From positions 4,356,408 through 4,420,407 of the forward strand of contig CAJFCJ010000006.1 of assembly GCA_904063045.1 (NCBI GenBank): a stretch of 64,000 nt of DNA, read 5' to 3'. A program made the position numbers and the translations under genes. This document shows positions 59,402 to 63,448 of this stretch, piece by piece; position 1 is the first letter of the stretch; each line of letters begins with the position of its first letter. Below the pieces are notes generated by a model that was not told the origin of the DNA, searched no databases, and saw only the letters and a list, made by a program, of their open reading frames with translations. Origin of the DNA: Dimorphilus gyrociliatus. Lineage: Eukaryota; Animalia; Annelida.

Positions 59402-60292
59402 TCACTCTACAGCAGACTGGAATACATGTTTTTCATGATGCTGTAAAGCATGCTTTCGTAATTGAATCTTCTGACGAAAAGACGCATAACAAACGCTGCA
59501 GATATATGGCTTTATACCACGATGAACTAACATATGTCGATTTAAAGTTGATTTGTCGTACAACGTTCGAAAACAGATCGGACATTGGCGAACTTTGGTC
59601 GGATCCGCTGGTTTTGCAGGCGTTCTCCCTCGCCTTGTTGGTTCAACGTTTATTTGAGGGAACCATAAGCCGGCATCCAGTGAAAAATTTGGCGGGAAAA
59701 CATCAGTTTCCGGTTCCTTTTTTGAATTTTCTTCTTCGATGTCAATTTTTCGATCGGTATTAATAGAGCGTTGTGTTCGGAGTTTATGGCAGATGGAAAA
59801 CTTTGTAGTATTAGCTAAAGGCGTATCGGTTTCTGCCTAGAAACAAACATTAATGGGGTGAAATAGATGGCGCTTTGACATTCCAATAACTATACGAATT
59901 TTAGAATATATCTAACAGTTCTCTGTAATTACATTTAATTAGACGGCGGCGGTGGCATTTTTAATTAAAGCCTATTCCCTAATTAATTATAGCCAAAGAC
60001 CATTGTTTTTTTTATATATACATACATTTTCCACATCTAAATCAGTCGATTCGAATTCGTTTGGCGGGAGAACATTTGGCTTCTTAATAATTCTTTTAGG
60101 ATGCGAGCTTTTCCTTCTGCAAACAAACCGATCGATGAAAGATGGAATCAGTAAAACGTACAGAGAAAAAAGCTTAAACGCCTACAAAACGCTTGTCCAT
60201 AAATCGATAAAATATAAAATCGCAATTTTCTTGTATTCCAAAGAATGACAACTCACCTCTTCGTTCCTGGCATCTTCAAATATTGTATTCAT
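59402..60292 (-). CDS. ZF cassette D3 (59836-59402, 2 C2H2 fingers) with optional 12-codon leader exon 60292-60257
   Basis: Missing from ORF track. Acceptor CTAG|GCA, phase 0, 435 bp open: CPICFRTLYDKSTLNRHMLVH-RGIKPY-ICSVCYASFRQKIQLRKHALQHH. Leader MNTIFEDARNEE|GTGAGT is phase 0. Confidence 0.85.
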
Positions 60293-60869
60293 GTGATTGG
60301 AGTGTCGGTTAATTAATCATAAGTGTCATTTTAAAATTGACTTCATTTAAATATTTTGTTCTTTTTCGTTATAAGAAATTCAGCCCTGGTGTTTTACAAC
60401 AGAATCTATCCAACGATTATAAATATATATGACAAAATTTTAATTAGCAAGTAATACTAATGAAACAAAAGCGAAACTGAGTTAATCCTTGTTTAGCATA
60501 ATTGACTAGGGCGCCTCTGCGCCAACATTTTCTACACCGTTAGATAATCGATTCGAAGGCAGCGAATCGAATACTGCACAAATTTTCTCGAGCTGCAATT
60601 CGCGCCAGTTTTTGAATATAATTTGACTTTATTTTCTGTATTTTATTGTTAAAATTTACGACTAGTAAACACTTGGCACAACGAAGAAAATAAAAATAGC
60701 GCAAAAAATAAAATGATAAAAAATCAGAAAGGAAAGAACACAGCAGCTCTTTTTAAAGGGTCAACAGCTTAGTAATGCCTTTTAAAACTTATAAATAATC
60801 GGGAATGCATCAATCATAGAAAAATCAGAATAGCACGACACGAAGGAGAAATTAATTGGAAAATGTTTT

Positions 60870-61251
60870 TCATTCTGAATCTTCAGCAGTATCCTCGGCA
60901 AAATTGGCCGAAACTATGTAAGAAGAACGTGACTTGGACGCTCGTGGAACGTAATCCGTAAATATACCGTGATATCTTCTTAAGTGACGTCGTAGACTAC
61001 TTTTCTGCGTGAAATGTTGAGAACAATGCGGACATTGGTACGGTCGTTCGCCTGGGCGTTGGTTTAATTATAACTATTATTAGAATTAACAATTTTAAAT
61101 AAAGAGTTATACGCCTACCAGTGTGAACTCGGTAATGAACCACTAGCTTCGAATGTGCGTCCCAAGATTTTTCACAAACTGGACAAATTGTTACAGAAGG
61201 ATCGTCTGGCAGTGGGGGAACGGTGTCTTCTTCGACGGATCTCCGTCTTCT
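60870..61251 (-). CDS. ZF cassette D2 (exons 61251-61119 and 61051-60870, 2 C2H2 fingers)
   Basis: Missing from ORF track. Acceptor TTTTACAG|AGA, phase 0; [63 protein letters not shown]...EDSE*. Confidence 0.85.
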
Positions 61252-62524
61252 CTGTAAAAAAGAACACAGTAATTTTACAATTAAGCAAACATGATAAGCC
61301 TATCAGAGTACGAATTGACGTCAATCAGGGCGTGGTATGAAAAAAAAAGTAGACAGACTAGATTCGGTTTGAAAAAGTCATAACGATCACAAACTGATTA
61401 CTGAAGCTTTCATTTTCAAAAAGGAACCATCTAACCAATGACTCACCCCAAACCCAATGAATATAGAATTTGTCTGTAAATGATTTTTAACCGTTCGGTT
61501 AATAAGACAAACAAGAGGCACATGAGCGACCTTTGAACACGTTTTTTATTCGTTTTTTTCAATTGACGTAATTATACGTGACAAACAATTTTACAAACAA
61601 CTACCCTATGCACAAAGCACCTTAACAACATCATGAACGCATTTGTGGGTTTTTCAAACACGCTATATACAATTAATTCTTTTTTTTACACAATTGAAAT
61701 TCTTTAAAACATTTCATTGAGCAATTTCAATTGTGTTTACAAAAAGAGAACATTCTCCTTTTTACATGAACGCGTCTCTCCTGAACGACACAATTTGTTT
61801 CTTTCATGGCAGAATAAACAAGAACAAAATACTGTTTTTGTCTTAATAAATCTATACACCAAAAAAAAGAAAAGTTATACATATAAATAATGTATATAGA
61901 CATGTATATAAGTATATAAATATATATATATATATATTTATATAAATATATATAATTAGTTTTCTGAACGCGCAGCTATCGATGTGAAAAACATTGTTTT
62001 TTTTTTGGCAGTCTGCTAAGAAATGTTTGAATACTGGAAACTTGGCACAAAAATTTTTACAGAAAAAACTACACTGATTTTTATACGTTAGGTTTTAAAA
62101 AGCACATTTACTCTTAAACACGCTCACAAACACGCAAAAAAGAAGTCGAATAATGTGTTTTTTTCGGTGCAGGTCTAAATTTTTTAACATGTTTTCACCG
62201 ACTTTTGTTTGTCATGTCACTTTTTGATACCGTTTTTAAATAAACTTTAAAAAAAATGAAAAAAAAAGGATAAAAGTTAACGTAAAACAATAAATTATGC
62301 ATGAAAAACTTTGAACGCTAAAACGAAAGGGAACGCATTGCAGTTTTAAAAAAAAATAAAAAGTTTTTCTTTTTAAACCCAAAAAAATCTAGCTAGAAAA
62401 GAGAAGGAAAAAATTGAACATGTCTTGAAGTCTTGGATTTTTTTTCTTGTACTTTCGTTTGATCTGCAAATGTAAAAAAAGAAAAAGATAATTGATGTGC
62501 AACTCTCCCCAAAATCAAAAAATT

Positions 62525-62866
62525 CTATCCTTGACTTTTGAAAGAAGGGAAAACTAACCACTGCAAAGATTCTCCGTGATTATTCTTCATATGCCTCTTA
62601 AGGTGAGACCTGGTTATACATTGATGGCCACAGGTGGCGCAACTGTACCTCCTATCCGGCCTGTGCGTCCACATGTGCGTCTTCAAATTGCCTTTCTGTG
62701 AAAACGTCTTTCCACAAATCTCGCAGGAAAACGGCCTTGCACCAGTATGCGTAATGTAATGCCGATTCAAAGCCGATCGTAGGCCTATCATCTTGCCGCA
62801 TATCGGGCAATTCGGACTGTTGTAGTCGTCCGGAAGTGGTGGTACGGTCGACTTGTGACGGCCGCC
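62525..62866 (-). CDS. ZF cassette D1 (3 C2H2 fingers)
   Basis: Acceptor TTTTTGCAG|GGC, phase 0; [50 protein letters not shown]. The 3' end may be spliced differently. Confidence 0.88.
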   Translation of the reverse strand, partial: [113 protein letters not shown]

Positions 62867-63448
62867 CTGCAAAAACACACCAAGCAATATGGCCGTGTTA
62901 TTCAATAGTAATTGCTTTTGTTTATAGAAAATACTGTTCTCTCTTTTATTCGTACTGTTTTTTTCTTCGTTGTTTTTAAGTATATATATATTTTTTTAAC
63001 TGTGTGCCGTGTGAACATAATTAATGATTATTCGTTCCGTCGTTAGTGTATTTTCATGCGGTTTTGTTAGATAAATATATATTATTATATATGTTAATAG
63101 ATATATATATAGATATATATATATATTTATATATATATATTGAGACTATACAGCCATATTTTCTTGGCGGTTGCATGCAGGGTGGTTTAGTGAAAGGGAA
63201 TCGTACCGATTCAGACGAAGAACTGAAAATTACGGATTAAAGTTCTAACAGGATTGAATATTGGTCAAAATTTATTCCATTGTGTGTTCTCTTTGACCAA
63301 TATTATTTAGCCGCATTAGATCGAAAATCCGTTTATTTGGACGTTTATATTTCGCGAACACTTTCATTTATTATAATAAACATAAGATTTTTAGATAGAT
63401 TATAAAAAAAATACCCCAATTGGTAAAAAAGGTTTAGAAAGTTACAGA

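Follow-up and report, generated by a model that had tools for sequence, protein, structure and literature searches.

In Drosophila lola (longitudinals lacking), common 5' exons form a set to which one of several phase-matched 3'-terminal exons is spliced, each supplying C2H2 zinc fingers, a stop codon and a poly(A) site of its own. Cis- and trans-splicing are mixed at this locus; all mRNAs of mod(mdg4), also of Drosophila, are produced by trans-splicing, some of its cassettes are encoded on the opposite strand, and transcription of its alternative exons starts from independent promoters (PMC13490949). The ZAD, KRAB and SCAN families have a lineage-restricted N-terminal domain before C-terminal C2H2 fingers, and each is expanded in one clade. 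Here, we analyse three zinc-finger cassettes, D1, D2 and D3, encoded on the minus strand of a 64-kb stretch of the annelid Dimorphilus gyrociliatus genome (contig CAJFCJ010000006.1, assembly GCA_904063045.1; hereafter, the window, whose base 1 is record base 4,356,408, in the orientation of the record). Our results indicate that D1 and D2 are probably lola-style alternative 3' exons, cis-spliced to a gene that starts just right of the window, and that D3 is a gene of its own.

A first-pass annotation, made from the sequence alone, had described the three cassettes as orphan terminal modules of a candidate mod(mdg4)/lola-like trans-splicing system. D1 and D2, which lack a start codon and each end in a stop and poly(A) site of their own, are indeed terminal cassettes of this type; D3, with an ATG and a first exon to itself, is not. 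D1 and D2 thus fit an arrangement of alternative end exons like that of lola, in a family with a non-BTB N-terminal domain (N-domain). Unlike in lola, the paralogues in the window, genes A, B and C, have an N-domain seen only in annelids and, in the two scanned (A and B), without any Pfam match; furthermore, two cassettes are in evidence here versus about 20 in lola, and the D1 junction is compatible with plain cis-splicing, whereas the mixture of cis- and trans-splicing is a feature of lola. With mod(mdg4), D1 and D2 share the absence of a start codon in the terminal exons and, possibly, preceding promoter-like elements; in contrast, partners on the opposite strand and in neighbouring genes are excluded for D1, and the D cassettes encode classical C2H2 fingers, not FLYWCH. 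Gene B, a member of the same family, appears to have the same arrangement of one phase-0 donor followed by two serial terminal finger cassettes, although its N-domain exons lie inside the window, on the same strand as the cassettes. Finally, this family shares with ZAD, KRAB and SCAN a lineage-restricted N-terminal domain ahead of the fingers and differs from them in fold, the N-domain being predicted to consist of a helix (residues 2-25) and a beta-hairpin with no match among solved structures; in place of long arrays of fingers, it has 2-3 fingers and makes use of alternative terminal cassettes.

Cassette D1 is spliced to an exon outside the window

RNA evidence was drawn from contigs of four public RNA runs (X1, X2, X4 and X5) over window positions 58001-64000, assembled with k=31; these contigs carry no strand information, rare forms are dropped from them, and the depth of X1 is only about 4-6. 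All the minus-strand joints have GT..AG ends, which read CT..AC on the plus strand. Among the runs in which the stretch occurs are metatranscriptomes from marine and coral samples. Contamination of the RNA runs with DNA was rejected, because introns are removed and uncovered gaps separate the genes. Strains were compared by means of a Logan DNA contig from a related strain (L004, run SRR23372228), which spans window positions 57890-61890 with 89% identity.

The coding exon of D1 (62559-62866, minus strand) encodes three C2H2 fingers (Pfam zf-C2H2, E 6e-16), has no start codon and is preceded by an acceptor AG at 62868-62867. As proposed in the first-pass annotation, this acceptor is in phase 0, and it is in use (62867|62866): contigs of X2 and X4 begin at 62867, and junction contigs from three runs (X2, X4 and X5) show splicing at this position. 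Upstream of the joint, the junction contigs of all three runs contain the same 28 foreign letters. This exon end (AAGCCTATCAAGAAGCACAAAAGTCCG, minus strand) reads ...AAGCCTAT(C/T)AAGAAGCACAAAAGTCC and encodes KPIKKHKSP in the frame of the fingers, in phase 0, with the C/T position corresponding to one synonymous difference between strains. The 28-mer does not occur on either strand of the 64-kb window at up to 3 mismatches, and scans of metagenomes for it and for a D1 pattern found nothing. The absence of this partner from the window indicates that the dominant D1 mRNA is not made with gene A, B or C.

In X2, X4 and X5, the D1 junction contigs end 28-30 nt into the upstream exon, including in X5, where the D1 intron is uncovered. 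A k=31 assembly breaks where an exon end has several successors, which would account for this pattern and suggests that the D1 donor exon has more than one successor, consistent with a shared donor. The intron upstream of D1 is longer than 1.1 kb, as compared with roughly 60-190 nt for introns in this genome, a length typical of the cassette introns of the family, such as those of gene B (1.9-2.3 kb).

The D1 exon differs by a single base in 309 nt from the strain sampled in X2 and X4. Its end had been placed at a stop at 62525; this site falls within a 95-nt intron (62464-62558, minus strand) that is spliced out in X1, X2 and X4 (joint 62463|62559, with CT..AC ends). Removal of this intron creates a TGA stop across the junction (62560-62559 plus 62463), and the protein ends in ...GESLQ. 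The last exon of D1 (61504-62463, minus strand) is therefore a 3' untranslated region (UTR), covered by contigs over 61962-62463 and 61504-61904 and containing an AATAAA signal at 61550-61545. Part of this UTR (61500-61880) is 95-100% identical between strains that diverge by ~10%, exceeding the identity of the D2 coding exons, and this conservation suggests a regulatory RNA element.

Cassette D2 is conserved and has no start of its own

D2 consists of two coding exons on the minus strand. The first (61119-61251) has no Met and encodes a basic stretch, the motif VPPLPDD and finger 1 (Pfam zf-C2H2_15, E 2e-4), and the second (60870-61051) encodes finger 2 (Pfam zf-C2H2, E 1.7e-6), a tail and the stop, followed by a 3' UTR that extends to about 60620-60642. 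The intron between them is spliced in all four runs (joint 61050|61118). The acceptor predicted upstream of the first exon (AG at 61253-61252) had a mixed outcome: the AG is retained in the related-strain contig, but its use (61252|61251) was not seen in any contig of the four runs, and contigs from X1, X2 and X4 read through it unspliced.

Between strains, D2 shows 40 synonymous and 3 non-synonymous differences (pN/pS 0.02) and no coding indels; indels do occur in the flanks of D2 and D3, and those in the 50 nt upstream of the D2 AG are frame-shifting. There is an in-frame stop at 61302-61300, and a transcript beginning at 61363 would contain no AUG frame longer than 19 aa. The lack of a Met, the upstream in-frame stop and the absence of a usable AUG frame, together with purifying selection, imply that D2 is translated only after its acceptor joins an upstream coding sequence; to judge from its reading frame, D2 must be joined to an upstream coding exon. 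From the acceptor on, D1 and D2 are paralogous (46% identity, E 4e-19): both are in phase 0, and in each a basic stretch leads into VPPLPDD. This likeness starting at the acceptor argues for the same donor. We rejected the possibility that D2 and D3 are pseudogene cassettes, given their low pN/pS (0.02 and 0.04, respectively) and that both are expressed.

A conserved non-coding block (61300-61400, minus strand) lies 50-150 nt upstream of the D2 acceptor and contains TGACGTCA at 61324-61317. It is 90-95% identical between strains, as compared with 57-68% for its flanks, and could be an internal promoter, a splicing element or another regulatory element. The D2 contig of X1 begins at 61363, inside this block, after a gap in coverage (61364-61503) at the place of the D1 poly(A) signal and of a spacer with low conservation.

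D1 and D2 as probable alternative 3' exons of one gene

The arrangement that we favour, with moderate confidence, is a single minus-strand gene whose promoter and common 5' exons would be located a short way past the window's right end. Its last common exon would end in ...KPIKKHKSP, in phase 0, and cis-splicing would join this common donor to the D1 acceptor, the junction observed. The same donor would probably also join the D2 acceptor and perhaps an AG at 63865, the latter for a short fingerless product. Each acceptor choice would supply its own stop and polyadenylation site, such that one N-terminal part would be paired with different DNA-binding fingers, as in lola and apparently in gene B. 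The common part would most likely carry the N-domain, helix and beta-hairpin, of genes A, B and C. Contigs from X2 and X4 give continuous coverage between the window end and the D2 poly(A) site, save for two skipped AT repeats, and all their joints are of minus-strand type; this continuous coverage, and the layout of one donor and two cassettes in gene B, favour cis-splicing. If correct, this would mean that the lola design occurs in animals a second, independent time, here in the compact genome of an annelid and with a domain seen only in annelids, and would explain how a small genome multiplies its repertoire of transcription factors.

Several observations weigh against this arrangement. The D1 donor exon is outside the 64-kb window and is known only from its 28-nt end, no junction into D2 was found in the four RNA runs, whose contigs are strandless and lose rare forms, and no curated annotation model supports the D1 join. 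Promoter-like features, the motif pair described below and the conserved block, precede D1 and D2, respectively, and X1 coverage starts just downstream of each, which would also fit independently transcribed cassettes. On this basis, start-less D1 and D2 RNAs could be produced from promoters of their own and trans-spliced, within the same locus, to common exons of the right-hand gene, with D1 driven by the GCGCATGCGT pair at 63450-63499 and D2 by the block at 61300-61400; the alternative exons of mod(mdg4) have independent promoters of this kind (PMC13490949). The GCGCATGCGT pair is indeed far above chance, the X1 coverage edges near 63420 and at 61363 are by the motif pair and the conserved block, and the unspliced D1 and D2 RNAs have no usable AUG frame even though the frames are under purifying selection. 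Nevertheless, at the depth of X1 these edges may be dropouts, X2 and X4 contigs cross both putative promoters unbroken, a conserved block within an intron can also act as an enhancer or in splicing, and cis-splicing accounts equally well for the junction data. To our knowledge, trans-splicing like that in mod(mdg4) and lola is established only in arthropods. The genome paper for D. gyrociliatus, in addition, reports neither spliced-leader trans-splicing nor operons (PMC7854359). We therefore regard same-locus trans-splicing as quite improbable; were it true, it would mean a system of the mod(mdg4)/lola type in an annelid, built on a non-BTB domain. The existence of two strains about 10% apart makes the locus a test bed for trans-splicing outside arthropods.

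Somewhat less doubtful, while still unlikely, is that D1 and D2 form a small gene encoding only fingers, in which the KPIKKHKSP exon would be part of a short leader located right of the window, comparable to the first two exons of D3, having an ATG of its own and attaching no N-domain. D3 shows such a design 2 kb away and, by sequence comparison, KPIKKHKSP resembles the basic stretch in its exon 2; however, a basic stretch is also found in genes A, B and C, in the linker downstream of the N-domain, the contig breaks suggest a donor exon with several successors, and the length of the D1 intron is that of a family cassette intron. The first-pass annotation had instead proposed that trans-splicing could link any D cassette to the last common donor of gene A (about 42975), gene B (52459) or gene C (57370), even where the two are on opposite strands. 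These donors are all in phase 0, as are the acceptors of D1 and D2, in agreement with that proposal, although phase 0 is the commonest intron phase and the match consequently weighs little. Moreover, the only partner of D1 seen, in three runs, is absent from the window, D3 is cis-spliced to local exons on its own strand, and the finger exon of gene A itself is out of phase with the 42975 donor. Joining across genes is thus contradicted for the dominant forms of D1 and D3, and we consider it very remote for the D cassettes as a whole. A spliced leader was likewise rejected as the source of the 28 letters, which continue the D1 frame and, among the loose contig ends listed, were seen only at D1, and an Rfam search of 58-64 kb gave no match; with this result we also rejected a known non-coding RNA in this region. 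Altogether, cis-splicing of D1 and D2 to a gene right of the window remains our preferred reading, a situation that the first-pass annotation had itself named as refuting its proposal.

D3 is a separate gene

D3 comprises three exons on the minus strand. The first (60257-60536) contains the 5' UTR and an ATG at 60273-60271, with an in-frame stop just upstream, and, as computed from record lengths, D3 contigs reach upstream to about 60409-60536. The second exon (60025-60116), 100% identical between strains, encodes a basic stretch and VLPPNEF, and the third (59178-59835) encodes a linker and two C2H2 fingers (Pfam zf-C2H2, E 2e-8) and contains the stop (59404-59402) and the 3' UTR. The first two exons (MPGTKRRKSSHPKRIIKKPN...) are connected by a joint (60116|60257) found in X1, X2 and X4, and a second joint (59835|60025) connects exons 2 and 3. 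The product has 180 aa and starts with MPGTKRRK..., followed in order by the basic stretch, VLPPNEF, the linker and the two fingers. Hence, the acceptor predicted at 59836|59835 is real, whereas the orphan status attributed to D3 is not, because this acceptor joins the local exon 60116-60025 and the gene has its own ATG and first exon. D3 differs between strains by 25 synonymous and 4 non-synonymous changes (pN/pS 0.04), with no coding indels.

A conserved promoter and 5' region (60450-60600, minus strand; 95-100% identical between strains) precedes the gene, and only 38-70% identity is seen in the 100 nt that separate it from the D2 poly(A) site. The D2 contig of X2 stops at 60642, and the D3 contig extends to about 60536, as computed from record lengths; the short stretch between them is uncovered. 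We conclude that D3 is a separate three-exon gene encoding only fingers, with its own promoter and ATG, outside the D1/D2 unit. The region 60450-60600 also contains an E2F-like sequence (TGGCGCGAA) and a palindrome (ATTCGATTCG...CGAATCGAT).

Among the cassettes, the best match of D3 is gene C (E 5e-20 over 112 residues), and the similarity extends before the fingers. D3 is probably a truncated duplicate of the gene C cassette, starting at the basic linker motif of the family, as judged from these alignments. Gene C, on the plus strand, and D3, on the minus strand, are arranged tail to tail, with their 3' ends (59095 and 59178) about 80 nt apart. They carry the most similar cassettes (58339-59835), in what looks like an inverted duplication of the finger module.

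Genes A, B and C share an annelid N-domain

As the first-pass annotation had recognized, all three D cassettes encode C2H2 fingers, with Pfam matches in each. The two or three fingers per cassette are related to those of the annelid family combining the N-domain with C2H2 fingers, to which genes A, B and C belong: the cassettes of A, B (B1 and B2), C, D1, D2 and D3 show 27-55% identity (E 1e-9 to 1e-24) in all the pairs compared, a set that comprised every pair except C with B1 and B2. The last common exons end in ...MSPGK (A), ...IVNKQ (B) and ...DSRKE (C).

In gene B (51203-55241, plus strand), the phase-0 donor at 52459 is followed by two putative terminal finger cassettes, starting at 54407 and 54777, each with a stop. 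In gene A (42120-44084, minus strand), the finger exon (AG before 42562) is out of frame with the phase-0 donor at 42975 and matches the frame of exon 1 at its phase-1 donor (43352), so that a finger isoform of this gene may skip exons 2-3. The annotated gene A product, of 343 aa, runs on past the 42975 donor and lacks fingers. Homology searches found no annotated product with D1, D3 or the last exon of gene C: the search with D1 and D3 matched only an unspliced Logan reading frame (P0005), and that of a library of protein representatives with the gene C tail returned only a Logan frame of 142 aa. Public annotation therefore misses finger exons: the models of genes A and C lack those examined here, that of gene A stopping ahead of its fingers.

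The window contains no N-domain other than those of these genes in the searches made: tblastn with the N-domains of A and B against both strands found only A and B themselves, which agrees with the earlier statement that none lies upstream of the D modules on the minus strand at 59-64 kb. A Pfam scan gave no match for the N-terminal exons of A and B (only the last exon was scanned for gene C), and BTB is present in the window only in an unrelated gene of kelch type, at 11978. An AlphaFold model of residues 1-80 of gene A, from a three-sequence alignment (mean pLDDT 72.5), predicts a helix at residues 2-25 and a beta-hairpin with strands at 35-44 and 52-61; the N-domain of the family has about 55-60 aa. 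The closest models in the AlphaFold DB are all annelid-type C2H2 proteins, matched at their N-termini. One of them is DgyrCDS12651, and the accession series of the others points, in our reading, to Capitella and Helobdella. In the ESM Atlas, the best cluster is an annelid one (TM 0.64), a feature search of this atlas gave only sub-threshold hits, and a comparison with solved structures in the Protein Data Bank gave no match.

A basic stretch followed by V-x-P-P recurs before the fingers, as VSLPPQH in gene B (51640-51888), VLPPNEF in D3 (60025-60116) and VPPLPDD in D2 (61210-61251) and D1 (62820-62866). This combination may be a nuclear-localization or partner-binding motif of the family.

Outside these genes, a single-exon open reading frame of 345 aa (46325-47362), which we read as a presumable XAP5/FAM50-like gene, is not among the called genes.

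The region upstream of D1

Two copies of the NRF-1-like motif GCGCATGCGT, at 63450 and 63490, lie 40 nt apart (63450-63499, no strand assigned), about 580 nt upstream of the D1 acceptor. The first-pass annotation had pointed to an NRF-1-type promoter here (63449-63498), and the motif is indeed enriched, the window containing 3 copies in total versus 0.02 expected by chance; the third precedes the start of an annotated gene by about 180 nt. Upstream of D1, X1 coverage stops near 63420, about 30 nt short of the pair on its downstream side, and contigs from X2 and X4 cross it. In contrast to the motif pair, a short Met-Ala leader formerly proposed for D1 at 63157-63152 could not be sustained: no run contains an RNA joint from 63152 to 62866, and two contigs (X1-6 and X4-16) run unspliced through it.

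Within the D1 intron, a stretch at 63149-63865 (minus strand) is transcribed at about 30-40% of the depth of the D1 exon, as seen in contigs X2-11 (63149-63865) and X4-16 (62839-63825), and the X2 contig begins exactly at an AG (63866-63865). This stretch may represent an additional alternative 3' splice site with a fingerless product ('D0') or a retained intron. AT-rich simple repeats at 61905-61961, 63091-63148 and 63627-63663 break public short-read assemblies, including the contigs of the related strain.

A 28-codon open frame entering at the window end (63998-63915) was rejected, as it has no match in Pfam or the Protein Data Bank and is within chance. An RNA contig from X5, in which the D1 intron is otherwise uncovered, extends from 63948 to about 100 nt past the window end, and may belong to an exon or a UTR of the right-hand gene. 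At 63941-63946, there is a CACGTG E-box.

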